Notes: generated from the sequence alone by a model not told the origin. A DNA stretch of 64,000 nt from Ophelia neglecta (GCA_965285935.1 OZ260665.1:54746001-54810000); one strand, 5' to 3'; shown: positions 11,851 through 39,541, counted from the first letter of the stretch. Numbers and translations: made by a program.

Positions 11851-12369
11851 TTCATTAGGCCTACTCATCGAAAACATAAAATTTCTTTTATTTATTTATT
11901 ACTGTCACATTTGACTATATAGGTTGATGTACTGATAAGAATAAACTATATTGATAAGAATAAACTTTATTGAACACTGCTTGTCCTGAGAATTGTATAC
12001 TGTCAGAAACTGTTTCTTTCCAACACCCAAAAACAACTTCAAATTATTTTAAAGCACAAACTAATAGAGAAATTCCTTGTATCGAAATACTTTGTAAACT
12101 GGAATGTTGCTAATAGATAATAGTAACGTTATGCATATTGTCGTACAAAAAAAATATGTTCTATCTCCCTGTACTTTAAATTAACATTATTTATTAATAA
12201 TTTATTGATACTCGTAACTCGGTATGTCGATACGTAATTTCAGACGAAACAGTCTCGGTCATAATCTGCCGCCCTTAGTTAGTTCATTTCAAAACAAAAT
12301 CGCAACGATATGTAAATAATGCAGAATTATTGAAACAAAATAATCAAAAAGTCACGAACTTGCATAACA

Positions 12370-12418
12370 TTTATTTGTACTGGCCATTTATATGTATATT
12401 TACAATGATGCGGACGGA
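12370..12418 (-). promoter_or_regulatory. G1 3' UTR: miR-184 7mer-m8 seed site (12412-12418) and AATAAA (12370-12375)
   Basis: The minus strand reads TCCGTCC, 36 nt, then AATAAA. Confidence 0.65.
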
Positions 12419-12644
12419 TAAGGATAAACTGCAAACATACTTTATCATTTCTTCCTTAGGAACAACTTAGATTGTAAGTTCTTTCTCAAATTATAATGTA
12501 TGCATAAGAGAAGTACCCTCGAATAATATACTTAGACATAGTGTGGAAATAACCGATTTATAGCAGGAGGGAAAACTGTCTGGTCTTGATAATACAGTCA
12601 TAATGGTTTACTTTAAAACATAATGTTACTTTTCTATAAGATGA

Positions 12645-13184
12645 TTACTTATGAACAGAAATACTAATGTCTATCTTTTTCCTGCGAGGACGAGGAATAA
12701 AGGCCCCATTGAGGTCGAATTCATACCATGGATTGCTGGAATGTGTACCTTGGTAAGCGGTGGCTGGAACTGGCACTGGCACTGGTGTTGGGGCAGGTAC
12801 TGGTGTTGGGGCAGGCACTGGTGTTGGAGTAGGCACTGATGTTGGTGCTGGAACCGGAGTAGGCGATGGAGTGGGAACAGGTGCTGGATTCGGGGAGGGT
12901 GTTGGGGCAGGGGCGGGCACAGGAACAGGGGATGGCGTAGGCAAAGGAGTAGGCGCAGGAGCGGGTGTTGGTGAAGGAGAAGGACTAGGCATCATTGGCA
13001 CTGGAGCTGGAGGAGGCATCATCGGCACCATGGGCCCCGAAGCTGGGTGTGGGATCATTGGTATCATTGGGAAAGGAGTTGGAGATGGCCGCAGGTCATT
13101 TGGGATGTAATGATCATGGATGCCATTAGTAAGACCTACGCCTCCACCTGTCCCAGCGCCCACACCATTACCATTACCTTCGCC
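12645..13184 (-). CDS. In-frame C-terminal continuation of G1 beyond the TAG at 13185-13187 (179 codons, PAPT-rich, ending NPWY...PRRKKIDISISVHK)
   Basis: Same frame as the 13185..14726 ORF (13184 to 13163 is 7 codons). It ends in the motif shared with the G2 and G4 C-termini and is followed by a 3' UTR with AATAAA. Confidence 0.7.
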   Translation of the reverse strand, partial: GEGNGNGVGAGTGGGVGLTNGIHDHYIPNDLRPSPTPFPMIPMIPHPASGPMVPMMPPPAPVPMMPSPSPSPTPAPAPTPLPTPSPVPVPAPAPTPSPNPAPVPTPSPTPVPAPTSVPTPTPVPAPTPVPAPTPVPVPVPATAYQGTHSSNPWYEFDLNGAFIPRPRRKKIDISISVHK

Positions 13185-16100
13185 CTAACCACTGAAATGA
13201 CGGTAACCATCATCATAACCATGCCGCCCATCAGAGCCATAAGAATTAACTTGATAACCTCGAGGGGGATATTTCGGTTCATAGCTATGATAAGTATCTG
13301 AGCCGTAGCCTGAATGTTGCTCAGAGCCATAGGCATGATTTGAGTTAGGGCCATAACCAAAATGCGGGTCATGAACATCACTGACACCTTCCGTACAACA
13401 TGTGTCGTAGCGTGGACAGTACACAGTACCCGGAGCACATCTCAGTCTCCTCCACTCTCCATTGACACACCATTGGTAGAAATCTCTGTCGAAATCTGGC
13501 CTCCTGTGACCATCGATACATCGAAAGAAGGGTCGATTTGGTTTGAATGGACCAGGAGGCATTGGTGTCGGCATAGGTGTCGGCATTGGTGTTGGCATAG
13601 GAGTTGGCATAGGGGTCGGCATAGGGGTTGGCATTGGTGTCGGCATTGGAGTTGGCATTGGAGTCGGCATTGGCGTCGGCATTGGTGTTGGCATTGGAGT
13701 CGGCATTGGTGTTGGCATTGGAGTCGGCATTGGCGTCGGCATTGGTGTTGGCATTGGTGTTGGCATTGGAGTTGGCATTGGTGTCGGCATTGGTGTTGGC
13801 ATTGGAGTTGGCATTGGTGTCGGCATAGGAGTCGGCATTGGTGTTGGCATTGGTGTTGGCATAGGAGTCGGCATTGGTGTCGGCATAGGCGTCGGCATTG
13901 GTGTTGGCATTGGAGTCGGCATAGGTGTTGGCATTGGCGTTGGCATTGGGGTCGGCATTGGCGTCGGCATTGGTGTTGGCATAGGCGTTGGCATTGGAGT
14001 CGGCATTGGCGTCGGCATTGGTGTTGGCATAGGCGTTGGCATTGGAGTCGGCATTGGCGTTGGCATTGGAGTCGGCATTGGCGTCGGCATTGGTGTTGGC
14101 ATCGGAGTTGGCATTGGAGTCGGCATAGGTGGCATTAATGTGGGAAATGGAGGCATTGGCCCTGGCCTATGCTTAAAGTAATGCTTGTAATATGGAAGGT
14201 GAGGGTAAAAAGATCCGGGAATAATCGCTTTGCCTGGGAAGTAATTGAAGGGCGACAGTGGATGATGTCCTGTAAATGGTCCGGCGCCCGTATGTGTAGC
14301 TGTTCCGCCTCCGGCGCCGTTTGCCTGGTTCATCATGTTCATAATGTCCTGGACTGTCATAGAATCACCATTTGGAGTATTCACGACTGAAATGCCCCCA
14401 CTTCCTGGGTAGATGCTCCCAGCGCCCCAGCTTCCTACAGATTTAAATTTGTCATAACCATATCCAAAACCGTTCCCCAAGTAGGAGGGATATGGCATGG
14501 TGCCGGGAGCCGGTGTGGGTGACACGGTAGTGGTGGTTGTCGGCTGTGGCGTCACTGTAGTAGCAGGAGTCGGTGATGGCGTCGGAAGGGTTGTCGCCGG
14601 GGTTGGGGCCGGACCAGGACCCGGAGAGGGTGTTTGACCGTACCCATAACCAGGGTACCATCCTCCGAAACCTCCCGTATCAAATTTAGGGTGCAAAATC
14701 AAAGTTATCTCTTTTACAGCATCCACGGGATAAGGTGCTTGCCATCCTGCTGAGTTACCTGAAATAAAAGTTTGTTATAATAATCACATTAATATTAATG
14801 AAAAAGTTATTAACGCAATGTGTCCATATTCTTTGATGCAAATAAAGACCCGACCATTTACAAACATATAACAATGATTCACGAGAAAGGTGATGGTAGG
14901 TCTGTACGTATATCCGATCTGGCACCATCCCATTACACAGTGGTAAACGATGGAATACCGCTCCTTTTGTTTATTTAACACCCCTACACTAAACACATAC
15001 GCGTTGACAAGTTTATGAGTTTAGCTGCAGGGGGTAGAGCGATACAACTTTTATTGCTGTTAGATTTTGTATTCATGTCGCATTAGCCGAGGTTTTCCAT
15101 GATGACTCACCTAACAATCACTGGTAATTACACCAGAACGATTTGTTCAACACTTTGTACAATTAATTGTTTACATGCAATAAAAGTATGGGCGAGTAAT
15201 TATGATAACCTAGTACAAGTGATTTATTTTCTTTCTGATGTATCTGAATCATTCACAGGTCTACTGAATTTATTCAAACTATTGGTAATCCATGCTCGAC
15301 TTTCGATTTATCTGCTACTTTCTTAAGCCAGCCATTCAGGCAACATGTTTACCTAATGCAGCAGTTCGATAAATTAATTGACTACATATGTCTGACGTTT
15401 GGTTTAGATTCTAATGAAGATACATCGATGATTTTAGCTATAACATTTCATAAGAAATTATCTAAAGCAAAACGAAATGGAACATGCAACCGACTCAGCA
15501 ACTGAGCAATACAATTAAAGAAGTTTAGAGATTTAGGCGGACTGGACGCTACACTGTAAAAATGTTTATGCTAGTTGGCAATATCAAAATTGACGAGGTT
15601 TATAAATCCGCCAAATATAATAGTCAACAACATTATACTCTGTTACTTACGCTCTTCAACGTAAATATTCGCCAGTATTTATAACTCTGAAAATAAGTTA
15701 AGATTGTGGCCACCAACAACTCGCCAAAATAAATATTTTCACAAATAAACACCCAAGGAGATATAAACCGGTTGACATAGCTGTCCGAGAAAATAACAAA
15801 TTTCTTGTGTTGAAAAGGCATCTTTATGAAGCAGTCCTTAAACTTTCAAATGCACGATAGAGTGCTGGTATATTTACCCTGTTAAGTTAAAGTTAAAATC
15901 CTTGACAGACCCATTTTCGTCAATATCAAACGAGAAACCGACTTATCATTTGTTAGTCGCCGCCAACATCGAATTTCGCTTAATTGAAAGTTATAAACAC
16001 TTTTTGAAGGCATGGTTTGCTCAGTCCCGAAGATATTTTACCCAGCATTTTTAGAGTATAAGATTGCCGAACTGATACATGCTACTATTTTTTTAATCAT

Positions 16101-16306
16101 CAACTTGACCAGTTGCCAGCATAAAGTTTTGAGCAGTATTCAGTCGGTAAAGTATGATCTTTTGTATATAATCAGACATGTTCTGAAGGAAAGGTAAGGC
16201 TGCTTAAACATGGTGATAAAAAGCGCAACAATGAAAATGAAAACTCACTACTTGCGAAAAATCCAACCAATATAGAAATTCCTATTAACAGCGATGTAGT
16301 CCCCAT
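13185..16306 (-). CDS. G1: secreted Pro/Thr/Met-rich protein with (PTPM)47 and a ChtBD2-like module; join(16249-16306, 13185-14758), 543 aa (723 aa if the TAG is read through)
   Basis: Exon 1 encodes [19 protein letters not shown] (signal-peptide-like), then A|GTGAGT donor. The acceptor TTTCAG|GT at 14758 is phase 1 and in frame with the ORF. Cys module at 13395-13520. Confidence 0.85.
13395..13520 (-). other. G1 ChtBD2/CBM14-like module CIDG...[29 protein letters not shown]
   Basis: Has the aromatic-x-x-C-x9-C-x-x-G-x-x-aromatic and C-x12-C spacing typical of peritrophin-A domains. Confidence 0.75.
13561..14124 (-). repeat. Coding 12-bp repeat, (Pro-Thr-Pro-Met) x about 47
   Basis: Read from the ORF; the variation I see is confined to synonymous positions. 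Confidence 0.95.
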
Positions 16307-16383
16307 GTTGTAGCCACCGTGTAGTCACACCGATACTAGAGTGACGACCGGAAACGGAATGAGTAGCCATTGTAGCAGACGAC

Positions 16384-16390
16384 TTTATAT
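16384..16390 (-). promoter_or_regulatory. G1 TATA box (ATATAAA)
   Basis: About 78 nt upstream of the ATG; an equivalent element is present in all four paralogues. Confidence 0.6.
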
Positions 16391-19300
16391 GTTTGAAACA
16401 GAATGAAATTATCATTCATCACAGGTTGATCGAACATAACTCGGGCTAGGGTGCGTGTGCGGATGTCGTGTGTTGGCTGGCTTCAGCCAGGTAAATTATT
16501 CAATATTAATTACATTGTAAAAATTACTTGAATAATATCAAAACAAGTTCGTTTAGGCGTCGACATCAACAAACTCCTTTTTATTGCATTTTGTCTGTTT
16601 CCCATTTAACGACACAATTTAAGTTGTTGAGGGGTTGAGTAAACTGTTTATTGGATAATTAACAGAAGGCTAACAATTTAGTAAAACAATAGAGTTCTTC
16701 ATCATGATGTTTTGAATGACCAGCACAATGTTTTTATGCAATGATTTAGGGCCAACAAATACATGGAAAAGCAGATGATATCTGTCACAAATATCACTTT
16801 TAGCAGTTCAACTTAAATATTCGCAACGTACTTGGTAACATATTATGGAAACATTTATATTGATAATTAATTCTGCTCTTTCATCAAGGTGTTATGCCAT
16901 GATGTAACTACTTCCTATTGTGAGACACTACACCTTTAGCAATATTAATTAGCTGATTATACTGCAATGAATGCATTTTAATGTTCTAGTTATATAATAT
17001 AGACTTTAAGCAATGAAACGTTCATGGCCATTAGAACATTCCCTTGATTTGTTGATCCATTACTCATAGCATTGACGGATATGTCATTTATGCGCTAAAT
17101 ATTAATGAATTAAGTTATGTAGGATAGTCAAATAGGATTGGCCTATTTTCTTTTCACTTTCATACATTCATGCTATTCAATTTTTTATTTCTGTTCCCAT
17201 TTCTAAAGTGGGTTAGGTATGTGTCTTCAGATAATTTGACTAGGGAAGGCAAAGAATGAATTGAAATGAATATATATCGAATTGGAAAGAATGTGAAACA
17301 AGGTTTCATCCGAAGATACGCGGCCGAGGTGAAGAACATTTCCATCCCCGAGACGGATCCAGTCCCACAAAAAGTTGTTAATATCAGTGTGAGAAATGAG
17401 GCGATTAAGTTACTCATGGATATGCAACCATTTCCCCGGCAATGGTATAGGCTCAGTGCTCTGGTGAGATACATTTACTGTAGTATAGATATGCCATTGT
17501 ATATGTCTGGGAATTATGATAAAAAGTCGGCAAAGATACCTACATTTGACATAGTTCTACTACAGAAAGGCAAAAATTGATTATTAATGTTCTGATGATG
17601 CTATTATTTAAATTCAATGGCATACATTAACTAAATGCGACCGAAAACCGCTTAAAATAAGATATATGTACGAAGGACTGGAAGACTAAGGTGTTACAAA
17701 AATGCACGATGTAGGAGCCAAAGTAAAACGCGATCTCCATATTCGCTGTAGTTCTACCAAGAAAGTATAAAACTTACTGTTGCTACCCATAGGGCCAACA
17801 GTTTTTCATCGTATTAATAAATAAATGATACCCTCATCTGTGCCAGTTGCGTATAATTGTACTCGAACTATAAGTAGACGAAATGATGTATTAATGGTTT
17901 TATGATTTACCATTTAAGGATCTCTCTTTGTACCAACAGGTACATGTATCATAATTTATATAACTTACGCCACCCTTGAACACTTCTATATATATCATAA
18001 TTTCCAGAAAAATTGTAAAGCAAACAATAAGTTGGACGTTCAATATCATTAAATGTAACCTTATTTTCCGCTACAGTTATACATCCCTGCTATAGCATAA
18101 GGCGCTTTGGCAAACCCTTTAATTTGACAAAATAGGAAAATAAAACGCAGGTGGATTTCGTAGGTGGCTTTTTTCAGCACCAAAATTGCCTTAATGTACC
18201 TCAGGAATTTTTTAATGTTCAGATTCTGTTTTCATTTTGCCACTTTTTAATATTATTTCCCTGCCAACATCCCATTTTATCATGATCTGTCCAGGGCCCA
18301 TTGTCTTTACTTCGTCTTAACTAGTGACTTTGACATGCTGTCTTTTTCCGTTGTACAAGAATTCAACCAGTTTGTAAACAAAAAACTAAACAAGTACTAT
18401 AGTTTGTGTTCCGTCACTTAATTTAACCAACTGTTAAGACTACATAATTTTACATTACATACATCACTTCACGGTACACTGGTGAAAAACCAGGTGAACC
18501 CACCTGGGCGTATTTTAATTTAAAAATAAAGACTCTTGAATAATTTGAAGCAGTATAGACACCGGTAAACATACTTCTAAAGGTCTTTACAGCCTGTCGG
18601 CCTAATTGTAGGAATTTGTATTCGTCGTGGATTCCCCAGTGACTTCTATTCGCCACAAGAAATATACATAAATTTTGTCCACACTGCCTCTATACATTAC
18701 ATCGTTAACGTTATGCAACTCGTTACAACTGTATGGAGAAATGTTGACAAAAAAAGTCCTTCACTATGTGGTATGAAACTTTCAATTTTTAAACTCTACT
18801 ATGAGACTATTGTATATTTGCTAAATATGAATCAACATATTTGTTTGAAACGAAAACTACTCATTGGAGTCGGGTATCCATGAAAAGGTTCCTAATGGAA
18901 AAAGAGTCAAGGATACACCACGAGTACACCAATGTCGCCATCGAGCCACAGGAAGACAAAGGGTGCCCCGGTTGGATAATGGAGTGAAAGATATACCTTC
19001 TAATCAAACAAGGAAGTCACCGATTGTCTCTAGTGACAAGTTGGAAACAGAGATACACTAAGAGGCCTTCATTGGACCAATGCTCCCAAGGGCCTCTATA
19101 GTAACACAATTGAGTTAAGGAAACACAAGGAGGTTGCTAGTGGCACATTGGAGTCAAGGATATACCCTGATACACCAAGCTGAATGTTGTGTTCGATATA
19201 ATTTGATTGTTGTCTCTTCACAAACAAAGAAAAACATTCATGTTTAAAACTAGCCTACAAAAGGAGTAGAGACAAAGGGAGAAGTACGCCTACTGACGCA

Positions 19301-21821: not shown

Positions 21822-21984
21822 CTCACGTCAGCAGACAGTGCCTGGGGTTATGCCTCGAAGGGCATTCACGTCTGCAGACAGTGCCCGGGGTTATGCCTCG
21901 AAGGGCACTCACGTCAGCAGACAGTGCCCGGGGTTATGCCTCGAAGGGCACTCACGTCAGCAGACAGTGCCCGGGGTTATGCCT
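21822..21984. repeat. 43-bp GC-rich minisatellite, about 3.8 copies
   Basis: CTCACGTCAGCAGACAGTGCCCGGGGTTATGCCTCGAAGGGCA units start at 21822, 21865, 21908 and 21951. Confidence 0.95.
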
Positions 21985-22937
21985 TTGAGGTTACGTGGTA
22001 TCAGGTAGGCTGGTTTGACCTAACTTTACCTGAAGGCATCGGCTAAGTATTAGATAAAAGCAAGGGACCCAAGACCTTATAAGGATCTACCGTCACCTTC
22101 AATTAAACAATTTATTATATTTAATTTGCGTTTATTATATAGGAAAGAAATGAATTTGTTTATTGGAATGTTCGGCTATATGATTTGATCTTAACCTAGT
22201 CCAGGTGGCTTATGGACTTCTCAGACAACACCTTATATATACATTAACCAAATTGGATTAAACTGTTAAAGTTTTCTTCCAAACGCATTCCCAAAAAAAT
22301 CCAAATCATTTGGGGTTATGGAGCTTCCTCTGGCATTTGTTTACGTGGCGCACTTTAAATAATATATATTGTGGCACTTTATGAATAGGAATTCACTTAT
22401 GGCAGAAACGCATCTTAAATATTTGAAGCTAAACTTGATCAACTCGAGGCAGCGTCCGCGCTAAGACGCTTCACCCTAGGTCAGAGACGACCAAACTATA
22501 CGCTGGTTGCTCCTCTTGACCTAGCCTATGTATTTCAGGGCCAGAATGAATGATATAAAATCAGTTATGACTAAAATGAAACATTAAATCAAAATGAATA
22601 ATTGGAACAGTTTTAAATGCACAGAAGAATGCAAAGTTATATGCAGGGATTAAACTGAATTAAAACAAAGTCAATAATATTTGTTCGCTGACAGAGCTTA
22701 GACTTACACTTTGATCTGAAATTTACCTATTTTCAATGCACTACCGGGGGGGGGGGGTAATTATTCAAGTGGTTCCTCTGTTAAGTTATTTATTTGCGGT
22801 CCTTTTATTGTATGAGCTTTTTTGTAAACGTAGGCCTTCCCTCGACTACATGTTCATGAAATGACTATAATTAACATGCATACTTAAAAGAAAGTCGATA
22901 AACCATTCACAGTTTTATCAGTTTATAACAAATGTAT

Positions 22938-22970
22938 TTTATTTACACATTCTGCAAACAATCGGACGGA
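22938..22970 (-). promoter_or_regulatory. G2 3' UTR: miR-184 7mer-m8 seed site (22964-22970) and AATAAA (22938-22943)
   Basis: The minus strand reads TCCGTCC, 20 nt, then AATAAA. Confidence 0.65.
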
Positions 22971-23172
22971 ACGTGTTCAATACTCAATATTAAGTTCATT
23001 TTTAATGGATTTTGACCATTTGAGTGTAAAAGGAGAATGTGTTCTCCAGATCGGTATACGCATTGCATTTATCACAGTCGTATTGAGGACAGGACGTATC
23101 ATATATACTTATATTAAATCTCTAGTTAAGCAGGTCAATGGACAGCTTCATCATTGGTAAAAAGAGACTTGA

Positions 23173-26100
23173 TTACTTATGTTGATTTAAAGAAATGGTT
23201 ATATCAAGATGCTTCTTGCGGGGGAAAGGTGAATAGCCGAGATGCCAAGGGTTCTTGTATTTGGAAGGTTTTAAGGCAGACGACATGCCATTCCCAGTGC
23301 TATCATCTTCTCCCATATTATCGCTTGTCATGCCATAGCCGTTGCCATTCCCATCTGTCACTGTCATACCGCTATTGGTCATTCCTTTTTCCCCGTCGTC
23401 TGTAGCAGATCCATACCCATATCCATTGGTTTGTCCATTTGTCATTCCGTTACCATTCATCATGCCCTGGTTATCCCCGTTGTCTGTAGCAGATCCATAC
23501 CCATATCCATTGGTTTGTCCATTTGTCATTCCGTTACCATTCATCATGCCCTGGTTATCCCCGTTGTCTGTAGCAGATCCATACCCATATCCATTGGTTT
23601 GTCCATTTGTCAATCCGTTACCATTCATCATTCCCTGGTTATCCCCGTTGTCTGAAGCAGGTCCATACCCATATCCATTGGTTTGTCCATTTGTCATTCC
23701 GTTACCATTCATCATGCCCTGGTTATCCCCGTTGTCTGTAGCAGATCCATACCCATATCCATTGGTTTGTCCATTTGTCATTCCGTTACCATTCATCATG
23801 CCCTGGTTATCCCCGTTGCCTGAAGCAGATCCATACCCATATCCATTGGTTTGCCCATTTGTCATTCCGTTACCATTCATCATGCCCTGGTTATCCCCGT
23901 TGTCCGTAGCAGGTCCATACCCATATCCATTGGTTTGTCCATTTGTCATTCCGTTACCATTCATCATGCCCTGGTTATCCCCGTTGTTTGTAGCAGATCC
24001 ATACCCATATCCACTGGGTTGTCCATTTGTTTTCTGTTGGCTGTTTTCGTTACCATAGCCCTTGACCATACCCTGTGTCTTTCCAGTGCCCATTATCCCT
24101 CCGTTTCCTTGCTGCCCCTCACCTTCAAAGCAGCAAGTGTCGTATTTTGCACAGTAAATGGTGCCCGGGGCGCAACGTAACCTTCTCCATTGTCCAACCA
24201 CACACCACTGGTAGTACTTCTTGTTAGGGTCGGCCCGCCTCGTATTTTCTCTACAGACCTGTTTGGCACTGTGAGGCGGCAGAGAGGGCAATTCGTTTGG
24301 ATTCGTACTGGGAGCTGGGGTTGGAGCTGGGGTTGGCGCTGTAATAGGTGCTGCCGTGGGTGAAGGTGTCGTGGCGTCCGTTGGATAGGCGTTTTGTTTA
24401 GGGTTGGCATCAGGAGTCGGGGAAGGATAGGGAGTTGCATGAGGAGCAGGCGCCTGAGCATCAGTTGCGGAGGGCATTTCGGCTTGTGCAGGAGCAGATT
24501 TCGGAAGATAAGGTGCTGGATATGAGGCTGGGGTCGGTGCACTACTCCCGGTAGTAGTTTCCATTGAAGATCCACCGTTGGTTCCATCGGAGTTGGATCC
24601 AACCGTCGACCATGACGCATCCATTTTGCCAAAGTACATATGAGGAACGAAGGCGCCGGGTAGTAAAGCATGAACAGGCATATATGGTATCCCGCCCATG
24701 GATTGAGCCATGTTCATGGCTCCGGCGCCGTCCATTGATTTCATGCTATATCCTGCTGTTTGCATCATGTTGCCTTTGTCTGTTTGCGCTTTTTCCCCCG
24801 CGCCATCGCCATTTGATTCAGAGGGGCTTTGACCCTTCATATTGACCGACCCTGCCGATCGATCTCCGTACCCGTATGAACTGTATCCATTGCCAACATG
24901 TCCGGCATTGCCATTTCCTTTATTACCATTGTCTCCATCTCCATTACCGTTGCCGTATCCGGATTCAGGCGCCGGGATCCCAGTAGAAGGTGCTGAATTA
25001 GAAGCTGGAGCTATAGCCGGGTAGTCCTTTCCTTGCATCATACCACTTCCTCCATTAGACATCCCATTGCTATTGCCGTACCCAGAATGAGGAGCCTGGG
25101 TACCAGTGGATGGAACGGGAGCCTGGCCGGGGTAGACCATGCCATTCATATTCATACCATTCATCATACCATTCATTTGGTTTGTGCTTGAGGCAGATGG
25201 CCCTTGACCCATCATATTGACCGATCCTACCGGTCGAACTTCGTATCCATATGAACTGTATCCATTGGCAACATGTCCGGCATTGCCATTTTCTCCATTA
25301 CCGTTGCCGTAACCGGATTCTTGCGCCGGGATCCCAGTAGTAGGTGCTGGAGTAGGAGCTGAAGCTATAGTCGGGTAGGCCTTTCCTTGCATCATACCAC
25401 TTCCGCCATTAGTCATTCCATTGCTATTGCCGTACCCAGATTGGGGAGCCTGGGTACCAGTGGATGGGAGGGGGGCATGGCCGGGGTAGACCATGCCATT
25501 CATATTCATGCCATTCATCATACCTTTCATTTGGTTTGTGTTTGAGGCAGAGGGGCTTTTACCCATCATTTGTGAGGAATCTGTAGGTTGAACTCCGTAT
25601 CCGTATGATCCGTATCCATATCCAACGGGCCCTTGGTTTGTATTGTCTCCGGCGTTGCCATTTTCTTCCATACCGTCTTGACCATTTCCATTACCGTTGC
25701 CGTATCCGGATTCAGGCGCCGGGATCCCAGTAGAAGGTGCTGGAGTAGGAGCTGGAGCTATAGTCGGGTAGTCCTTTCCTTGCATCATACCACTTCCGCC
25801 ATTAGTCATTCCATTGCTATTGCCGTACCCAGATTGAGGAGCCTGGGCTCCAGTGGATGGGACGGGAGCATGGCCGGGGTAGACCATGCCATTCATATTC
25901 ATACCATTCATCATACCATTCATTTGGTTTGTGCTTGAGGCTGAAGTGCTTTTACCCATCATTTGTGAGGAATCTGTAGGTTGAACTCCGTATCCGTATG
26001 ATCCGTATCCATATCCAACGGGCCCTTGGTTTGTATTGTCTCCGGCGTTGCCATTTTCTTCCATACCGTCTTGACCATTACCGTGTCCGTATCCGGATTC

Positions 26101-28277
26101 AGGCGCCGGGATCCCAGTAGAAGGTGCTGGAATAGGGGCTGGAGCTATAGCCGGGTAGTCCTTTCCTTGCATCATACCACTTCCTCCATTAGACATCCCA
26201 TTGCTATTGCCGTACCCAGAATGAGGAGCCTGGGCTCCAGTGGATGGGACGGGAGCATGGCCGGGGAAGACCATGCCATTCATATTCATACCATTCATCA
26301 TACCATTCATTAGGTTTGTGCTTGAGGCAGATGGCCCTTGACCCATCATATTGACCGATCCTACCGGTCGAACTTCGTATCCGTATGAACTGTAACCATT
26401 GCCAACATGTTCGGCATTGCCATTTTCTCCATTACCGTTGCCGTATCCGGATTCAGGCGCCGGGATCCCAGTAGAAGGTGTTGGAGTAGGAGCTGGAGCT
26501 ATAGTCGGGTAGTCCTTTCCTTGCATCATACCACTTCCGCCATTAGTCATTCCATTGCTATTGCCGTACCCAGATTGGGGAGCCTGGGTACCAGTGGATG
26601 GGAGGGGGGCATGGCCGGGGTAGACCATGCCATTCATATTCATGCCATTCATCATACCTTTCATTTGGTTTGTGTTTGAGGCTGAAGGGCTTTTACCCAT
26701 CATTTGTGAGGAATCTGTAGGTTGAACTCCGTATCCGTATGATCCGTATCCATATCCAACGGGCCCTTGGTTTGTATTGTCTCCAGGGTTGCCATTTTCT
26801 TCCATACCTTCTTGACCATTTCCATTACCGTTGCCGTATACGAATTGAGGCGCCGGGATCCCAGGAGTAGGTCCTGGGGTAGGAGCTGGAGCTATAGTCT
26901 GGTAGTCCTTTCCTTGCATCATTCCATTTGCCATTCCGTAGCCATAACCATACCCTGATTGAGGAGCCGGGGTAACAGTGGATGGGGCGGGAGCCGGGTT
27001 TGGATTGGTCATGCCATATATATTCTTGTTTTTCGTCATCCCTTTCATGTCGTTTGTATTTGGGGTGCCAGGGGTTGGACTCGTCATACCTTTCCCACCT
27101 TTGTTGTCTTCATTCATCATCATGTTGTTTTTCATCATATTAGCAGAAGGACCAGTAGGGTATGGTTGCTTGGGTGGATTGTGCACAACATTCATCATCT
27201 TCATCATCTGGTCCTTCATTTCATTTATACTCATGCCATGGTCTGGGTAAGGGCTTGGTACTTGGTCAGGATTAGGTGTAGTATCCGGAGTGCCGGCACC
27301 AGCTTCCATGTCAATAACACTGCTGATAAAATACCCACCATAAAACGGGCTGTACTTATAACCGGGAGGAATACCTATAAAATAAGACAAAGATCCCTAT
27401 AATTGATTGCGTAGACTTATGTTATTGACTTTCAACACAACAATAGTTCACCTTATACTTATCAAAGTGGTTAATGCAAAGAGTGTTCTATTGCTGTTAC
27501 AGTCTTATATCAAATTGTACAAGGTGTAATAACAAGAATAGTTATTGGGTGGTAACTCATGTCCTTATATATGAAGCACCATCTTGGATCTCTATTGAGT
27601 GTACATAGGATGTAAGCATACCTAGTTTTGCCATCCTGGAGACACTAAAATCGTTGATTTTGTGGCGTAATTTAACTAGAAACACTAATTTTTGTATTTT
27701 CTCTCCAATGAAAAAATATTCTAGACTTAAATAAAATAAATTCAGAAAAAGACCGTTTTTGTTTTGTATTCATTTGCTTTTTTATTTACAGATTACATAA
27801 AAAGAACAGCTTAAAGCATGCACTGTGCTTTTAAGATCGTTCATATGTTGAGACCTACAAAAATGTCGCATGCATGTTTTATAATACAACTATGGACGTT
27901 GATCAGTTGATTGGGAATGTGGACCAACAATTAGTCTTTCGGGAGGTGTCCAGTGAACTTTTCCTTTAACCTTCGGTGTCGGGATCAAATTTCACCGGAC
28001 ACCTTCCCTGGAATCAATAGTTTGGCCTAGTTCGAATTTCCAAGTCAAGGTCCATGACAGTTTACTAGCTATCTAACATGGGAGACTCCTTAGTCAGGGT
28101 ACGTTAGGGTGAAAAAAGGTCCTGATGGACATTTGTTCCCGGGGTGGTGGATAAGGGCTCACAGAAGTACAGGTGCTGAAATAAACAAAAAAATAAACCC
28201 TACGAAAAGACGTACTTACCCCTGACAAGCGTTCCTGCTAGCATAAAGAGAATTATGAATGGCGAAACAGTCCACAT
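23173..28277 (-). CDS. G2: secreted Gly/Asn/Met/Tyr/Pro-rich repetitive protein with a ChtBD2-like module; join(28220-28277, 23173-27374), 1419 aa
   Basis: Exon 1 encodes MWTVSPFIILFMLAGTLVR, then G|GTAAGT (58 nt, the same length as in G1). The acceptor TTTTATAG|GT at 27374 is phase 1 and in frame with the 1405-aa ORF. Cys module at 24130-24255; ends PRKKHLDITISLNQHK. Confidence 0.9.
23398..24030 (-). repeat. Coding 84-bp (28-aa) repeat GYGYGSATDNGDNQGMMNGNGMTNGQTN, 7 copies plus a partial
   Basis: Counted in the translation; the 84-nt period is visible (23401, 23485, ...). Confidence 0.95.
24830..26960 (-). repeat. Coding long repeats (~350-390 nt units of two types) in G2
   Basis: The GDNTNQGPVGYGYGSYGYGVQPTDSS block occurs at ~26767, 26026 and 25633; the EVRPVGSVNMMGQG block at ~26350 and 25210, with a diverged copy at ~24850. 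Confidence 0.9.
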
Positions 28278-28346
28278 GTTTGTAAAGGATCTGTTTGCGA
28301 TCAGACCATCAAAGGATATTGTGTGACCCTCTATTGCGGCAGCAGG

Positions 28347-28354
28347 TTTATATA
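28347..28354 (-). promoter_or_regulatory. G2 TATA box (TATATAAA)
   Basis: About 70 nt upstream of the ATG at 28277. Confidence 0.65.
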
Positions 28355-30590: not shown

Positions 30591-30638
30591 CTTTAAGTCT
30601 AGGACACAAGAAAGCTTTCTTGTGTCCTAGCTTTAAGT
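30591..30638. mobile_element. 32-bp perfect palindrome flanked by an 8-bp direct repeat (minimal DNA-transposon relic)
   Basis: CTTTAAGT-CTAGGACACAAGAAAGCTTTCTTGTGTCCTAG-CTTTAAGT. Confidence 0.7.
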
Positions 30639-33508
30639 CAAAAAGGTTACAAAAGACAATTCATATTGATATTTGAGGATAAATTTTTCGACAAATACTG
30701 GTTATATGATTATATTGTTATAAAGACCCAGTTTAATAACAAGTTTACATAAAACAGCGCAATTAATCGTATACGCCTACCCATACAGAATAACTTTAAT
30801 AAAACCTTAGTATTAAACCAGTTTACATGCACTTCACCTGTTTTAAATTGTGCACCTGCTATGGTAAACATTACACAGTCATGTTTTACAATTGCATTAA
30901 ACTGAAGGTGAAATAATAAAAAAGAGCTGTAGTAAAACAGTTTTATGCCTTAGTTTCCACTATTATATACTATAGTAAACAAATTAAGTTTCCTAATGAT
31001 ATAATAAAATGAACTTCATCTCTTTAATGATTAAAGGCTGATTTAAAATATGTGATATATTTCAAGGTCGTTACCAAATTCGCGAAACAAAGGGTATTTT
31101 TTCTCAACTTCGCATGTCCGGACAAACCCTTAATTGGGGTATTTTCAAATACACTTGGCGAAATGAAAAAAGGACATTTTCCAATGTGATTCCAAATGGC
31201 CAGGAAGTTTCCATGGCTGTATTCATAATATGTGAATTCCCTGTCGAAAAGGAATTATTAAGCATTTCTTTTCCTTACTAGTGTTGCTCTGCATTAGGCA
31301 AAGAAAACATTTTGTAGACAATAGTGGTACCCATTCAGCAATTTGTTTCTGTTATACGTCAATGATTTGGCAAATGTTTCTTTATTTATCATTTATTAGT
31401 TGATGATTCAAATGCTTTTATTACTGGTAAACATTTAAAGGGTTTCGATTGGCACAATAAACAGTGAGGTGACGACATTTGTTAAATGGCTTCAAATTAG
31501 CAAGCCTACTGTTTTTCTCTCATACATATTTCGCAGAGGCAAAGTTTTCGATACGTTTTCGATACGTCAAGTCGGAAAATTAAACTGCTAAGGACAACAA
31601 ATAACATTCTTTGGGCAAGGAACAAAGGAGTGTTAAAGATAGTGTGAGGTAAGGGTACGGTTCCACAAGAGTTGGCTTTCGCTCCCCTATCGGCACAATG
31701 AAAAAAGTCATCTGCGTGAATGAAAGGGATGTGGGTTTAAAAAAGGAGGGAGGGTTAGAAGGTTAGGCAATTGTTATTTGTTGGGGCCATAAAGTAAAGT
31801 TTTCGGTGACGAGAGTCAAAGATCTTGAGGGAGGGGAGGAGAATTGGCCATTTGAAAAGCGTACAGGTATGGCAGAAAGAAATATATTTAGTATATTTTT
31901 GTCATAAGTCATAAATAAAACATACATGTTTTACATCAAATATAGGAGATACCAGAATAACCGTGTACTGGTCAAATAACCTGACGCTACAATTCGATTT
32001 TGGTGGCTCACTCATGTTCGACATGTACATCAAAATGAGATATTAGACCTATGACTTTCTAATGATAGAACATTGAGCGTGAAAAATAAAAATCAGAAAA
32101 AGTGATATGGTGGGTTAGTCTTAATCTACCCTGTATCATTTTTAAATCATTGTTGCACCTTTTTTTGAAGGTACAAGGAACACTTCAATAGTTGTATACT
32201 TTTGTGTTAAAGTCACATTTTGCGTTAATATACAAAAAACGCAATATGTTAATGTACTAATCGGTATATTGTGCTCTTCATCCTAAATCTATCGATAACC
32301 TATATCATAGAAAAAAGGAACTTAATTTTTTATTTAATGAATATAAAATATCGAAAATAGAAGACTTTGGGTTTTTACTTTGCCTTATTAATTAACATAA
32401 ATTCGAGATAATAATTATAAATTAATAAGTTTATTACCATGTGATAACAAAATCTCACATACAAATGAATCAATAGAGAAAAACGTCAGATAATATGATC
32501 TGAAAGCTGACAGCAAAAACAACAACAAAAAAGGCGCAAATAGTCCTAGAGTAAAAAAGTCAATCTCATGATTGCAACATAAAGTTACACTTACATGTCT
32601 AGCAGAAGTTGTTAGCTTGTATGACTTGAAATTCCGGACTCTTGTTAACATTTAATCCCAAATAAATGCGATTTTGGAGACTTGGTCGCCTGAAGGAATG
32701 CATAACTCATATAAAGGTTCCTTCCCATAAAAGTGAGCTCAGTCTGCAAGTAGTACTTGGAAGTCAAATATACCTTGTTATAAGAAGAAAATTTCCCGAC
32801 GCTTAAGATGCGACCCAGGTTTTTTTTCTAATATTTCGAGGCTGGCGTTACCCAGCTACAGAAAGCCCATCCCATGTAAATGTGTACACGGGGCATGGCA
32901 GAACACAAGGGAATGCATTCCTAATTTTGCTTTCCGAAAGCAAAGTTAGGAACGCATCTAGCAAAGCTATGCAAAATGCTACGACTGTTAATGGAGGGTG
33001 TTATTTTTATGAACAATAATTCTTGCAAAGTAGGCCTTTGCAATCCTTCTCCATTACGAAGCTAATCGGGATCTGTGCTCGAAGCTACCTAGGTTTTAAA
33101 AACTCTCTTGATTGGTGTTGAGATATTTCTATACAGCCTCCGGATGAAATGGCAAGATTATATCGGATGTTAGGATACCTTATCAGAGACGCATATTTCG
33201 AGGAGTATCTAACCAAGTTGGCTGACACATTTTCTATGCAAGAATTGTTGATATAGGACAATGTTTGATAATAATTCTCTCTTACATCTTATTGAAATCT
33301 CAGCAACTTTAAATGTTATTTGCCCACTTCAGTTGCTCCATATGTATAGAGGTACATGCAAAGGTTTGAAACTAGCGAGCTTTTATCGAAAGTATTAATA
33401 TTCCTGCCGAACAATAGAACCTATCAATGCATTGTATTCGGCGACAGAAGACTCTATTGAAGGGTCCCCACATAGATTGACATCAACAAAAGCACAGGAT
33501 TTAAGCAA

Positions 33509-33544
33509 TTTATTCTTATTCACATTATTCACAAGAAGGACGGA
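33509..33544 (-). promoter_or_regulatory. G3 3' UTR: miR-184 7mer-m8 seed site (33538-33544) and AATAAA (33509-33514)
   Basis: The minus strand reads TCCGTCC, 23 nt, then AATAAA. Confidence 0.65.
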
Positions 33545-33821
33545 TATTTTATATTACTTATATAATATCGGTAGATTCCGCTCTTTCTAATATTCAGCAA
33601 GCTGGATAACATGTCGGCTGTCTTTTATGTTTCGTTGTCGGTAACCAGTTAAGCAAAGTCTGAAGCAGGAGGTTATTTCCCCAAACACCTTTCCTTATTG
33701 AGTCTCCTCGGCAGGTTTGTCTCGGACGATTTTTTTTTCTGAATAACAGAATATAATGATACTCTTGCATTGCGATTTGAACGAGTAATAATTATGTATT
33801 CATTCTGCAGTGTGTAAAATG

Positions 33822-36255
33822 TCAATCTCCTGATTTGCCGTACGAGTTTTCGCCTACATTGTAGACACAGATGAAAAGGTCACTGTGGAAGAGTGTCCCG
33901 TGAGGACATGACATGTTGGTCCAGACGCCATTGTGACACACCTGGAACTCGCTTGCCGAGTAATAGACCGGCCTGATATCTCCGTAGATACAGTCAGTGT
34001 TTCCGGGAGGCATCATAGTCATACCGGGGCCAGGAGTGGGCATTGGTGTCGGGGGAGGAGTAGGAGCTGCTGTTGGAGCCGCAGTAGGCGCGAGGGTCGT
34101 GGTCGTAGGCGGAGTTGGAGCCGGGGTAGGGGCTGGGGGAGGACCATTCGGGACCCACCATGGGTAGGAACCCGGTGCCTGTCCTGCGGGATGGACAGGA
34201 GGAAAACCATAAGGCATACTGGGTGGTGCAGGAGTTTGGGTGGGAGGTGATGGGGTAGGGGCGGGGGGAGATGGTGTCGGAACAGGGGGAGATGGGGTTG
34301 GAGCAGGGGGAGACGGAGTAGGTGAAGGGGTCCCCGGAGGAGGGGGTGGTCCGCCGTTGTCCGGCATCCAGGGATTAGCCGAGTCATCACCCCATGGAAA
34401 ATTAAAGGGGAAGTAGTGATGAAGGTTGTAGATGTTAACAGGAGCTTGCCCGGGAGAAGGAGAGGGACCTTGCCAGATAGCGGGGACCGGGGAAGGCACG
34501 GGGGTTGGAGTTGGAGAGGGGGAAGGCGGAGCGGGAGTTGGGGTTGGTGACACAGTCGTGGCAGGTGTAGGGGCTGGAGTGGCCGGCATTTCCGGAGAGG
34601 GGCCTTGTGCCCAGAGATTATTCTGCCACTGGTTGTCTATTAACCACTGGTTGTCACCTGCCCATGGAAGCCATGGCATTCCCCAAGGGTCTGGGTAGGG
34701 GGAAGGTGCCGGAGAAGGCATTGGAGACGGTGCTTGTGTTGGTGATGGAGTTGGAGTCGGAGCGGGGGTAGGCGCTGGAGTGGGCGCTGGAGTAGGCGCT
34801 GGCGTGGGCGCAGGAGTGGGGGCTGGTGTTGGGGCAGGAGTAGGGGAAGGTGGCGTGGGTGTCGGCCCAGGCATTGGTCCTGGCACATGATATGGGTCAT
34901 AGCCATTATGAAAGAAATTATAAGGATTATAGTATCCTGTGTCTTGAAATGTTTGATACAATTGGGGGTGGTATTGACCAAAGCCTGGGTAGACTCCGGG
35001 TCCGGGCTCTGGTACTGTTGGAGGTGGTGGTGGAGGAGGAGTCGTTGTTGTGGTTGTCACAGGTTGTGGTGTGGTGGTTGTCGTTGTCGTTGTTACCGGA
35101 GAAGGCGTTGCAGTGGGGGGTGCAGTTGGTGGCAGAATATTCCACTGGTTGCCGTCGTATAGCGCCGGTTTCCAGTCCCAGCCCTGCCATGCTGGGTTAC
35201 TACTGCCCCACGGGTCGGGCACGGCCGGTTCCGCGGTGTCCTGGACAGCCGACTGAGCCACTGGCACCCAACCATAGCTACCGTCCTTCTGTCGACCTAG
35301 CTGAATAGTGATTTTCACACCTGTAAAATAGAAATCATTAAAAGTGTAGAAGCAGCAACATGGGTACAAGGCATGATGATAATTGATTCTCATCATCATC
35401 ATCATTATTGTCTGTACATAAGAATATTACACCAAATTAATGATGCTATCAACAACTAGAAAACAATGATACAAATTAATTATTTGTAGAATCATAGCTA
35501 TAACTTTTATAGGCTGCAGATAGAGTGAAACATTTTTAGAATGATTTGTTCAACAATGGTTTTAATGAATGTATTTTGATATTTGAAGTTTTAAATTTCA
35601 TTGTTTCTGTTGTGGCACGTGAAAAATGTCAATAGTTCAAACACATTTCAAAATAACTGCAAAAATTCCCTGCCAATTTATATATGTCTATATAAATGTA
35701 TGCATGTCACGAGGTTCTCATTTTCAACAAGCAGCATCTCAATGAACCTCATAATACAAGAAATCAAACCGAATTTATATCTTATATTGTCAGACTTATA
35801 ATTATGAGTATTTACCAAGACAAAATCTAACGACGCAAATTTATTAGAATATTTTAGAATTATAACTGTCCCTCCGGACTCCTGTATTATTACTTTTACT
35901 AAATACACATCTGTTATTCTTTGAAAATTAGAATGTTTTTATATGCCGAAGCACGATATGTCGATTTCGCCTGGCAGTTGAAAAACAGTGCTTAGATTCT
36001 ATCTGCTGACATATAAGACTCATTTCCCTTCAATTCCTTCCCAGTCATAATCTGACACGATCCATAATGGGGTACACGTGTAGAAATAGAAATATGACAT
36101 TTCTCTTTGCAAATCCTGGGTGTGAAAAACCATAGGTGCTTGTATGTAGAACTTATAGATGAAACAACAATGCACTTACTTTTAGCGACGGTTCTGTGGA
36201 TTTCATCTTGTATGACTATTATTCCAAGGATGAGATAGACCAAATTCGTTCTCAT
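33822..36255 (-). CDS. G3: secreted Pro/Thr/Trp-rich protein with a C-terminal 4-Cys ChtBD2-like module; join(36180-36255, 33822-35320), 524 aa
   Basis: Exon 1 encodes MRTNLVYLILGIIVIQDEIHRTVAK, then A|GTAAGT. The acceptor TTTTACAG|GT at 35320 is phase 1 and in frame. Module CIYG...FQVCHNGVWTNMSCPHGTLFHSDLFIC at 33867-33992. Confidence 0.85.
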
Positions 36256-36314
36256 TTTGAGTCAGATATAAGACCGACAATGCGGCCAAATGGAACAAAA
36301 AGCTGTGGGTGTTG

Positions 36315-36322
36315 TTAATATA
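36315..36322 (-). promoter_or_regulatory. G3 TATA-like box (TATATTAA)
   Basis: About 60 nt upstream of the ATG at 36255. Confidence 0.45.
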
Positions 36323-37536
36323 CCGTAACTTGGCAAAATCTATTGATCAAAGCTAATTTAACAATTTCATTGTGATCAAACTATTTAATATTCCGTCTAG
36401 GACGTGTCCTGGCTTTTATGTGTTCTCGATGTTAAATGATTATATTTATTATAATATTGCAATGACTACCAATGAACGGTGAAAGTTTCAATGATATTTG
36501 ATAATGAGTGGTCTACCCGGAGGGCTCCGAGCCTGCTATTAACCGTTACCAACTCTAGAGAGAGGAACGGTCTGTTATAGGGGCAATGACCTACGGGTGA
36601 GGGTCGGCATCATCCCTCGTCTCATCACATGTCAGCTGATTGTAATCGTGCGATGAATTCTAGTAATTATTATAGCATTATTGTAGCATCATTTGTCAAA
36701 GCATTTATAACAATTAGCCTCCCTTGTTTATACATAATGTTGTGCTCGAGGCCACCTCGATGATATTAATATTATTTATAATTATTCGAACGTCATCACC
36801 CTGTTAGTGATAATAAAGAAGTATTTTGCATTAATTTAAAATCAAGGTTACATGAAGACTTATCCCAATTCTGATAAAAGCGATGGAAAATGTTCAATGG
36901 ACTGTTGGGGTAAGCTGCAAGTTATACCAGTAAACTACGCTTTAATAGCATGATCTATAGTGTCTATTTTCAATGGCTTTTGTTGGGACAGAAACCCTTT
37001 GAAAAAAGGAGTTAGGCGTGTTATTAATTGACCGGTTAATGAAAAGTACAATCACTACATTACACGCCATACATATCTAAGAAAACTTGCTATCTGCTAC
37101 ATATAATGCGAGGTTTGTCAGCCATTAATTTTTGCTTAAAAATATAGCAATCGAGTTAATATCCCAAACTAAGGAAAGTAACAAAACTTTATAAATAAAA
37201 GCCAGAAATTTTAGTGGCTGTGTTATCAACCCTTACCCAATTTTATACTGAAGTTAGATTACTTCTTTTATTAACTAAACAATACCGTAATGCAAGGAGA
37301 CGTCACATTGATAAACCTTAAAATTAACTTCGAACACATTTAAAACATGGGCCTACTGGTGAATTAAAGTGTAAATCTTAATAGACATAGGCCTAATAGA
37401 CACGGGCCTACTGATGAAAATTTTACCTTTCATTCACCAACCCTCCAGTATTATACCTATGACAATCTAGAGCTGCCCTAATTGACGTTTTAGCTTAGTT
37501 TTATAATCTATTCTGACGTTACGCATTTGGCGTGAG

Positions 37537-37907
37537 ATGACTAGCCACATGGCATGACACGACTAGCCACATGGCATGGCATGACTAGCCGCATGGCATG
37601 ACATGACTAGCCGCATGGCATGACACGACTAGCCACATGGCATGGCATGACTAGCCGCATGGCATGACATGACTAGCCGCATGGCATGGCAATAATAGCC
37701 GCATGGCATGACATGACTAGCCGCATGGCATGGCAATACTAGCCACATGGAATGACACGACTAGCCGCATGGCATGGCAATACTAGCCACTTGGCATGAA
37801 ATGACTAACCGCATGGCATGACATGACTAGCCGTATGGCATGACATGACTAGCCGCATGGCATGACTCGACTAGCCGCATGGCATGGCATGACATGACCA
37901 GCCACAT
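37537..37907. repeat. 22-bp minisatellite (ATGACTAGCCGCATGGCATGAC), about 17 copies
   Basis: Read directly. Confidence 0.95.
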
Positions 37908-39481
37908 TGATCTATTGAGCCATAAGCAGCAGAAACACGACAACAGTCAATTATACAGATGGTCAGTCATTACATTAGTATAACGTAATTCGTTAATAAA
38001 TGTGGCCAACCTTCCACAATCAGATAAAACAACGTGAAAATGACAATTAAAATGACAATGACATTGAAATTAATTGTTAATAATTCAATACATAGAATCT
38101 TAAGGCCCTCACATTTAGTGTTTCCAAGGGATAACGGCACATAATATGTGTATGCTGTGCGGAAATTCAAGTGCACTGATATAATTATATGATAGTTTGG
38201 TTCCTTAAGAGAAAAATAGACATACTGGTATAAATTTCAGGTTATAAATGCGTCCAGCGCACGGTTTTAGAAAATGTACATGTCGCGGTATTAGTAACTC
38301 CGCCCTTTCATGTGACAGTAACATCTGACCATATGCCAATTGATGGGTTTTAAAACACTGCTTGTGCTAGACACATGCATGAATATATAACGCAGCCAAA
38401 GCAAAGAGTCTAGCTCTCTTATTACCCCCAAAATATGCAAAAGTTACCGGTGAATTGCCTCCTTCTGTAACTAGCAGTATAACAACATAACTCAATGTCG
38501 TTGAAATGTGTATTATCTAACATAACTGTTTGAAAATGGCCCACCGAAGAAGTAGCACCCGTCAACCACTACATAGATAAAACAATAACATGATGTAGCT
38601 TTTATTTGGCCTCCGCTTTTTTCGTGACCGGAGCTGAATGATCAGCAGTCCGACATGGCAGTGGCGTGGCATACTGGCATACTGGCTTACTGATAAGATA
38701 ACTATGGAGGGAAAGTGGCTAAACCGTTGTCGAAAGGACGTACAGGTGTGAAGGAAACTGCCCAGTGTGCTGGTACTTTTCTACTGGCATGGCAGTTGTT
38801 GGCTGTACACTTGCAGCATAACAGAGATGCTGCAGCGCCAATGGTGGTTTTCACCCGAAAACAAAGACGCAAAGAAAAGTTGTAGCTATCCTGGACAGAA
38901 AAAGGGTATAACACCATTCTATCCAGGTTTTTCTACTGATCTCTCTGTCCCCTATAGGGAAACTATCCAATGATAATGACGTTGCTCATATGGGTCATCT
39001 AAGGGGTAACACTCATATGCCCGTGTCACTAATTGTCATCGAGAATTGGACAACACATTTGGAATAGGCCTATACCTCTTCACTTAGAGGAATCACGACT
39101 CCCCTGGCTCAGTGTCTCCACTTCTTTACCCAAGTTTTAATTAACCATCAATTTCCAGTGAATAAAAGTCATCTAAGAATTTTCCTATCAATATGTGGCT
39201 TTACATAAAAGTCATTCAAAAGAATATGTGTCTAAACTGCAAAGTTAGGCAAATACCAATACAAGGCCTCCCTACATATTATATGCCGATATTTGAATTA
39301 ATACATGAGGCATCATATTCCACGCTTCCATGCATATGATTTAATTTACATGCTTAACCTAAAATAATATAGATATTTCTTCCTTTCATCCTGTATCTGG
39401 TAACTATCGTGCTTTATTTCCTAAATTTGTGTTCGGAAAAGGAAGCGACCCAACAAAGAACTTAATTTCAGCATATGATTT

Positions 39482-39541
39482 TTTATTTATTCAGTAGTAC
39501 TACATAACAACGTACATGGGAAAATACCAATTAAGGACGGA
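39482..39541 (-). promoter_or_regulatory. G4 distal 3' UTR: miR-184 7mer-m8 seed site (39535-39541) and overlapping AATAAA signals (39482-39491)
   Basis: The minus strand reads TCCGTCC, 43 nt, then AATAAATAAA. More proximal AATAAA hexamers exist at 39727-39732 and 39892-39897. Confidence 0.55.

Follow-up and report, generated by a model that had tools for sequence, protein, structure and literature searches.

Four tandem genes for putative chitin-matrix proteins, found in a 64,000-nucleotide (nt) stretch of the genome of Ophelia neglecta (GCA_965285935.1 OZ260665.1:54746001-54810000; the whole stretch, whose sequence is free of N, is called the window below), each carry the heptamer TCCGTCC shortly upstream of a poly(A) signal. 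Comparison of these genes, G1 to G4, with one another and with relatives from other species indicates that the heptamer is, with high probability, a selected cis-element of the end of the 3' untranslated region (UTR), whatever its reader. Read as RNA, UCCGUCC is complementary to the seed of the microRNA (miRNA) miR-184, which is in our view the most likely reader, and we hold this second reading with moderate confidence.

A pattern search of the window gave five copies of TCCGTCC, all on the minus strand and none on the plus strand, where 1.84 copies were expected for both strands together from shuffled sequences and 0.99 for the minus strand from a first-order Markov model. Four of the copies lie each downstream of a large minus-strand open reading frame (ORF), the AATAAA that follows them leads into GU/U-rich sequence, and the positions of the upstream stop codons agree with those of the orthologues (Table 1). 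The distance from stop to heptamer varies between 205 and 673 nt, but that from heptamer to AATAAA only between 20 and 43 nt. Positions 0-43 nt upstream of an AATAAA make up 6.5% of the minus strand, and four of the five copies fall there (P about 9e-5). Moreover, the four window 3' UTRs have no 7-mer in common other than TCCGTCC. The original prediction, which was made from the sequence of this window, had given the strand of the four copies and their distances to AATAAA exactly. It had also noted a single further copy on the same strand, and this fifth copy is indeed the only other one in the window. It was said to lie in a LINE, a label that remains unverified, since no Pfam domain match was obtained there. 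In the block that contains the fifth copy (window positions 10000-12000), GC content is higher (0.455) and both strands carry overlapping ORFs. AATAAA itself is markedly biased in strand over the whole window, where the minus strand has 104 copies and the plus strand 61. An origin of the motif from a common repeat was considered and rejected: the plus strand has no copy, the minus strand has one other, and across about 90 kb of related loci no other gene end carries it.

For the 60-nt windows before the four poly(A) signals, the probability of finding the heptamer in all of them would be about 5e-13 if these windows were independent. The original prediction argued in this way that four hits in four genes imply selection. 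However, the genes are paralogues, so that the argument from independent hits fails and one ancestral site could explain all four copies. Selection has to be judged from what was conserved and what was not. The original prediction also held that the four UTRs lack obvious similarity, and around the heptamer this was right: over 60 nt on each side, ungapped identity between the window UTRs was 12-21 of 60, which is random for their composition, sensitive pairwise searches between any two UTRs gave only scattered 8-12-mers, and MAFFT left the UTRs unalignable except at the heptamer. It was too strong for two pairs: G3 and G4 share the 12-mer TATATAAGTAAT, and G1 and G2 share TCCGTCCG.

A few single-module relatives of the four genes were found by an exhaustive profile search. 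The only named one is a ‘Chitin-binding type-2 domain-containing protein’ of Capitella teleta (ELT97693.1; P0124), which ends in ..ITISLGQHK like the tails of the G1/G2 type. Contig ctg22787 of the ENA assembly ERZ25069296 carries both a G4-like (P0057) and a G3-like gene (P0129), a further G3-like gene (P0136) stands on a 988-nt JGI contig, and two other ENA assemblies contributed P0113 and P0026, the latter with two modules. The family is probably annelid. On ctg22787 the G4-like gene is followed by the G3-like gene, an inserted DIRS-type retrotransposon and a G2-like gene of 1445 amino acids (aa), in the same order and orientation as in the window. The duplications within the cluster, like the cluster itself, are therefore older than the split of these species, and the four gene lineages have long been separate. 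In the chitin-binding (CBM) domain, the G3 orthologues are 48-53% and the G4 orthologue is 49% identical to their window counterparts.

The G3 orthologues of two other species retain the element. In the ENA G3 orthologue, CCCGTCCTT is located 353 nt past the stop and 42 nt before the first AATAAA. The JGI G3-like contig has an exact TCCGTCCTT 466 nt past the stop, and here coding sequence and site are contiguous on what is possibly a transcript contig (L004). The only 8-mer common to the three G3 UTRs is CCGTCCTT, and it is still common when the window G4 is added. Across all six UTRs, from three species, the only shared 6-mers are CCGTCC and AAATAA, the latter belonging to the poly(A) signal. 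Since the core was kept in the paralogues and in the G3 orthologues of two species while the flanks are random, its retention goes beyond neutral drift. It is thus conservation against randomized flanks and across species, not the number of hits, that upholds the claim of selection, and on this comparison of sequences it is very probable that the heptamer is a selected element of the 3' UTR end. That the site has no function is highly improbable. It could be a leftover of an ancestral UTR or a product of gene conversion that matches miR-184 by chance, and in its favor a single origin would be enough for four paralogues and some family members lost the site. Against this, 6-7 consecutive bases, including a CpG (the observed/expected ratio of CpG in the window is 0.59), have been kept unchanged across six lineages from three species, whereas the flanks are random. 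Furthermore, a conversion tract of 7 nt between random flanks is implausible and conversion between species is impossible.

The place of the element at gene ends, once per gene, would also be compatible with a role at the level of DNA, for example as a site for RNA polymerase II pausing or a termination factor, or as a downstream enhancer or insulator that the genes have in common. We regard this as most unlikely. All nine copies of the core at gene ends across the species are on the coding strand, and the distance to the coding region is variable whereas that to AATAAA is constant, as expected for a 3' UTR RNA element.

miR-184 is probably present in annelids. Its sequence is printed letter for letter in 88 papers on mammals and birds, on insects, ticks and mites, and on a bivalve (clam), and one survey places the family among those specific to bilaterians (PMC3840308). 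Broad expression is on record for amphioxus and other animals (PMC3145563), and in the pearl oyster expression is high in all tissues examined, including the mantle (PMC6627748). As originally predicted, UCCGUCC is the exact 7mer-m8 complement of miR-184 (nt 2-8, seed GGACGGA), and the miRNA sequence on which that prediction was based agrees with the literature. All four window genes have the 7mer-m8 site, as does the JGI G3 orthologue, and the ENA G3 orthologue has a 6mer; the seed match is conserved in preference to the flanking UTR. The context was rightly called favorable: the flanking 60 nt have an AU content of 0.65-0.82, and the position is at the UTR end. In predicted folds the heptamer is mostly unpaired. 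A hairpin or other structured element was rejected, as the predicted ensembles have no conserved fold and leave the site mostly unpaired.

Two arguments favor miR-184 over other readers of the same bases. Firstly, the boundaries of the invariant block coincide with those of the seed match, the complement of nt 2-7 being present in all six UTRs and that of nt 8 in five. Secondly, by our own estimate a chance agreement between a conserved heptamer and the 7mer-m8 or 7mer-A1 site of any of about 40 ancient miRNA families is expected in about 0.5% of cases, and it is on this basis that we consider miR-184 the probable reader. In the proposed mechanism, the heptamer, kept by selection as a linear cis-element within the final 30-60 nt of each 3' UTR, would be present in the mature mRNAs of the tandem, predicted chitin-binding, low-complexity matrix genes. 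The host would encode and express miR-184, which, loaded onto Argonaute, would pair through its seed (nt 2-8) with UCCGUCC. This pairing would dampen or clear all four mRNAs wherever miR-184 is expressed, and the outcome would be joint post-transcriptional control of the G1-G4 cluster.

Several observations weigh against miR-184 as the reader. The base opposite its nt 1 is never A in the six UTRs, and 3' supplementary pairing is absent, with duplex energies equal to those of shuffled-upstream controls in six of six. Both are auxiliary features that do not define a target site. For G1 the original prediction had pointed to a GATAA positioned for possible 3' supplementary pairing, but this was mis-sensed: GAUAA is the sequence of the miRNA itself, and the target would need UUAUC. 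Such a UUAUC is present in G1 4 nt upstream of the seed match, and the supplementary pairing itself did not hold up, with a duplex of -18.2 kcal/mol against -18.5 +/- 2.4 kcal/mol for shuffled upstream sequence. A same-sense 13-mer resembling miR-184 in the G1 (near the GATAA) and Capitella UTRs was at chance level and was discarded. The window has no mir-184 locus, and Rfam found no RNA family in it. The G4 heptamer is 673 nt past the stop, behind two earlier AATAAA at offsets of 317 and 482 nt, and the 3' end of G4 is the least certain of the four.

The distribution of the site in relatives adds to these points. The ENA G3 orthologue keeps only the 6-mer match CCGUCC. The core is absent from the ENA G4 orthologue, from Capitella P0124 and from the two-domain P0026. 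At a UTR length near that of the window G4, the ENA G4 orthologue shows no more than ACGTCC, 21 nt ahead of AATAAA, apparently the remnant of a site that has changed at two positions at the heptamer's 5' end. In its sequence (L003 8300-8345) cACGTCCtg stands before AAATAAA, about 640 nt past the stop. The contig of P0113 ends 188 nt past the stop, and the locus read for the ENA G2 orthologue (L007) ends about 25 codons short of the gene's stop; neither was scored for the site. The conservation in relatives that the original prediction called for was thus found in the G3 orthologues of two species but not in the ENA G4 orthologue, P0124 and P0026. Since three more distant members are without the site, the battery is not family-wide. 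As judged from these sequences, the element is ancient and under selection both in the lineage of G3 and in the four genes of the window species; it is not universal in the wider family.

Two further features are unexplained by miR-184 and also count against it as the reader. The base that follows the core is G in G1 and G2 and U in the other four UTRs, and UU after the core is invariant in all four sequences of the G3/G4 class, which come from three species. In addition, a RAGUA occurs 10-24 nt upstream in six of six UTRs, with a simulated joint P of 7e-8 for a pattern that was chosen after viewing the data. It is part of the 8-mer TATAAGTA in three UTRs, among them that of the ENA G3 orthologue, where TATAAGTA is 13 nt upstream of CCGTCC. 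These features raise the alternative that a sequence-specific RNA-binding protein or ribonucleoprotein reads a bipartite motif, RAGUA - N(4-19) - YCCGUCC(UU or G), just upstream of the cleavage site. Such a factor might act in the choice of 3' end, in mRNA stability, or in the localization or translation of matrix mRNAs, and the miR-184 seed match would be coincidental. It would account for conservation past the seed, for the short and fixed distance to AATAAA (20-43 nt in the window and 42 nt in the ENA orthologue), and for the lack of both an A opposite miRNA nt 1 and supplementary pairing. We nevertheless consider it rather unlikely. It would have to leave the seed match to the small chance estimated above, RAGUA was recognized post hoc and occurs in 4-37% of 32-nt windows of the same AU-rich UTRs, and UU is missing in G1 and G2. 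Furthermore, no RNA-binding protein that recognizes such a motif is known to us.

On the minus strand of the window the 9-mer half-element ATAAGTAAT occurs four times, exactly once per family gene, and on the plus strand there is one unrelated copy. In G3 and G4 it precedes the heptamer in the UTR, and in G1 and G2 it coincides with the His-Lys-stop codons (Table 1). Although it lacks the GU, ATAAGTAAT is similar to a 5' splice site, the complement of U1 small nuclear RNA (snRNA), at positions +3 to +7. A more specific form of the preceding alternative would be a bipartite 3'-end control element of chitin-matrix genes across annelid species, within about 70 nt of the cleavage site, that combines RAGUA as a U1-snRNA-like or 5'-splice-site-like half with YCCGUCC(UU). 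A dedicated factor, possibly together with miR-184, would then couple poly(A)-site use, stability or localized translation to matrix secretion. This proposal is speculative and we think it unlikely; if true, it would amount to a previously undescribed 3' UTR regulatory module of a lophotrochozoan structural-gene family.

Alternatively, the element could be read not by canonical miR-184 but by another small RNA whose seed is identical to that of miR-184 or overlaps it. This could be a miRNA specific to the lineage, a paralogue of miR-184 or a 5' isomiR, which might pair for example with CCGUCCUU. The block CCGTCCTT of the G3/G4 class would fit a seed shifted by one or two positions better than it fits miR-184, and two miR-184 isoforms exist in abalone (PMC13544226). 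Yet G1 and G2 have G after the core, so that the miR-184 register is the only one common to all six UTRs. To our knowledge no such alternative miRNA has been described, and we judge this explanation to be very unlikely.

Table 1. Coordinates of the heptamer copies, associated 3' UTR elements, main coding exons and a neighbouring exon in the 64,000-nt window.
Feature	Position	Strand	Remarks
Heptamer TCCGTCC, G1	12412..12418	-	followed by G; 229 nt past the TAA stop; AATAAA 36 nt on
Heptamer TCCGTCC, G2	22964..22970	-	followed by G; 205 nt past the stop; AATAAA 20 nt on
Heptamer TCCGTCC, G3	33538..33544	-	followed by TT; 280 nt past the stop; AATAAA 23 nt on
Heptamer TCCGTCC, G4	39535..39541	-	followed by TT; 673 nt past the stop; double AATAAA 43 nt on
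Fifth copy of TCCGTCC	10388-10394	-	inside GC-richer block
Poly(A) signal AATAAA, G1	12370..12375	-	first after the stop; GU/U-rich stretch next
Poly(A) signal AATAAA, G2	22938..22943	-	first canonical signal after the stop
Poly(A) signal AATAAA, G3	33509..33514	-	sole AATAAA within the first 1.3 kb downstream
Distal poly(A) signal, G4	39482..39491	-	overlapping AATAAATAAA
Half-element ATAAGTAAT, G3 UTR	33553..33561	-	8 nt before the heptamer; within the 12-mer TATATAAGTAAT shared with G4
Half-element ATAAGTAAT, G4 UTR	39548..39556	-	6 nt before the heptamer; within the 12-mer TATATAAGTAAT
Weaker half-element AAGTA, G1 UTR	12438..12442	-	starts 24 nt upstream of the heptamer
Weaker half-element GAGTA, G2 UTR	22981..22985	-	starts 15 nt upstream of the heptamer
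ATAAGTAAT at His-Lys-stop codons, G1 and G2	12644-12652 (G1), 23172-23180 (G2)	-	200-226 nt upstream of the heptamer
Main coding exon, G1	12645..14726	-	CBM14-like module 13365-13538; tail ..DISISVHK
Main coding exon, G2	23173..27390	-	ORF of 1405 aa; Gly/Tyr/Met/Asn-rich repeats; CBM14-like module 24100-24273; tail ..DITISLNQHK
Main coding exon, G3	33822..35405	-	Pro/Thr-rich; C-terminal CBM14 domain 33825-34007
Main coding exon, G4	40212..41999	-	acidic, low complexity; CBM14-like module 41646-41819; tail ..KINIIVDVHKKRRRRK
TPR-repeat exon (PF07719, PF13424)	46624-47280	+	neighbour of the cluster

The genes that carry the element form, in line with the chitin-matrix cluster of the original prediction, a tandem family of paralogues with a CBM14-type chitin-binding module and long low-complexity regions. 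Low-complexity repeats dominate G1 to G4, and each protein has one cysteine-framework module. The match of G3 to PF01607 (CBM_14) scored 29.2 bits against a gathering cut-off of 22.1, and G1 and G4 scored about 12.6 bits; G1, G2 and G4 are each below the Pfam cut-off. All seven aligned modules of the family matched PF01607 at an E-value <= 1, the best at 8.6e-06. A profile built from the module retrieved hundreds of multi-CBM14 proteins in the exhaustive search, and it weakly matches the CBM14 domains of chitinases as well as squid beak chitin-binding protein 3 (PDB 7bwe). By these sequence matches the module is a divergent CBM14 chitin-binding domain, and chitin binding by the family is predicted. 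Compared with CBM14/peritrophin-A (chitin-binding type-2) proteins, the family has the module with six cysteines and the match to PF01607 in common. It differs from them in having a single divergent module with a terminal CC pair, set in very long regions rich in Pro/Thr, in Gly/Tyr/Met/Asn or in acidic residues.

Candidate signal-peptide mini-exons were found 0.8-0.9 kb upstream of the main exons of G2, G3 and G4, which suggests that the products are secreted; exons were searched separately. A C-terminal tail ..I.I....HK is common to G1, G2 and G4. The main exon of G3 starts with ..KITIQLGRQK (about 35290-35320, minus strand) and its ENA orthologue with MKITIQMGKR (L002 5983-6020). This N-terminal start resembles the C-terminal tail of the G1/G2 type (..KITISLGQHK in Capitella), as if the tail motif had been reused, and a tail-like motif adjoining basic residues could be a processing or assembly motif. 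The G1 exon consists of two ORFs in the same frame that are split by an in-frame TAG (13185-13187, minus strand). This TAG could be a recent nonsense allele or a sign of a pseudogene, an assembly error, or part of a very short intron. The half downstream of it still encodes the conserved family tail (..NPW..RRKKIDISISVHK), and if the TAG were a real stop, the UTR would be about 770 nt long with the heptamer still at its end. In G2, an ATTAAA is present ahead of the first canonical AATAAA.

Besides the genes of the family, the window contains a TPR-repeat gene as a neighbour of the cluster. Its best match, with 69% identity, is on a contig of 82,372 nt that we take to be ctg22787, which also has 82,372 nt, and the neighbour is probably syntenic with the cluster on that contig. 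In another assembly (L006), no CBM14 gene was found within 10 kb of the TPR gene. A further locus (L008) was not scored, as it starts 1.5 kb upstream of the TPR gene and the side of the cluster falls outside the contig. Retrotransposons flank the cluster on ctg22787: upstream of the G4-like gene (L003 1-4732) there are ORFs for RVT_1 and for a tyrosine recombinase (Phage_integrase), and the DIRS-like element between the G3- and G2-like genes spans L002 8527-12353. In the window, intergenic tandem repeats were seen in the gap between G4 and G3 (22-nt unit, 16.6 copies, 37528-37893) and downstream of G2 (43-nt unit, 3.8 copies, 21822-21984). Word-index homologue searches with G4 and with the CBM region of G3 had no match, nor did an exact look-up of the G3 ORF, and two metagenome scans with domain alignments of the G3 type and the G1/G2 type gave no confirmed locus.

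If miR-184 does read the heptamer, an ancient miRNA would jointly control a whole tandem family of fast-evolving structural genes outside the model organisms, and a concrete lophotrochozoan target set for miR-184 would be at hand. It could also provide a handle on how the builders of chitin structures such as bristles, tubes and cuticle switch matrix production off. The heptamer has outlasted nearly all other similarity among the window genes, whose only conserved protein domain (CBM) is 26-64% identical among the paralogues and whose UTR flanks are random. UTR boxes shared by clustered paralogues can thus be found in raw sequence and then be validated by synteny-guided comparison.

In literature searches, no earlier work that connects miR-184 with the matrix genes of annelids was found. 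What is new here is a well-founded set of candidate targets for a miRNA that is itself known; both conserved seed sites and gene batteries coordinated by miRNAs are already familiar. Like canonical 7mer-m8 sites as scored by TargetScan-type logic, the element combines a perfect complement of nt 2-8 with an AU-rich UTR end and drifting flanks, and as happens with such sites it is reduced to a 6-mer in one orthologue. It departs from them in having neither an A opposite nt 1 nor supplementary pairing, and in the conservation of an additional 3' UU and an upstream RAGUA. Another parallel is found in Drosophila, where the clustered Bearded and E(spl) genes have the Brd-box, GY-box and K-box in their 3' UTRs, motifs that were later recognized as complements of miRNA seeds. 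There, too, a short box stands in dissimilar UTRs of tandem paralogues, matches the 5' end of a conserved miRNA and was spotted by eye. Those genes are regulators of the Notch pathway with several boxes per UTR, whereas the present ones are lophotrochozoan structural matrix genes with one box beside the poly(A) signal. A likeness in function is miR-29, which controls collagen and other extracellular-matrix genes in vertebrates, and in both cases one miRNA family would preside over a battery of secreted structural matrix genes. The miRNA, the phylum and the matrix (chitin-associated rather than collagen) are different, and the genes proposed here form a single tandem cluster, in contrast to the dispersed targets of miR-29.

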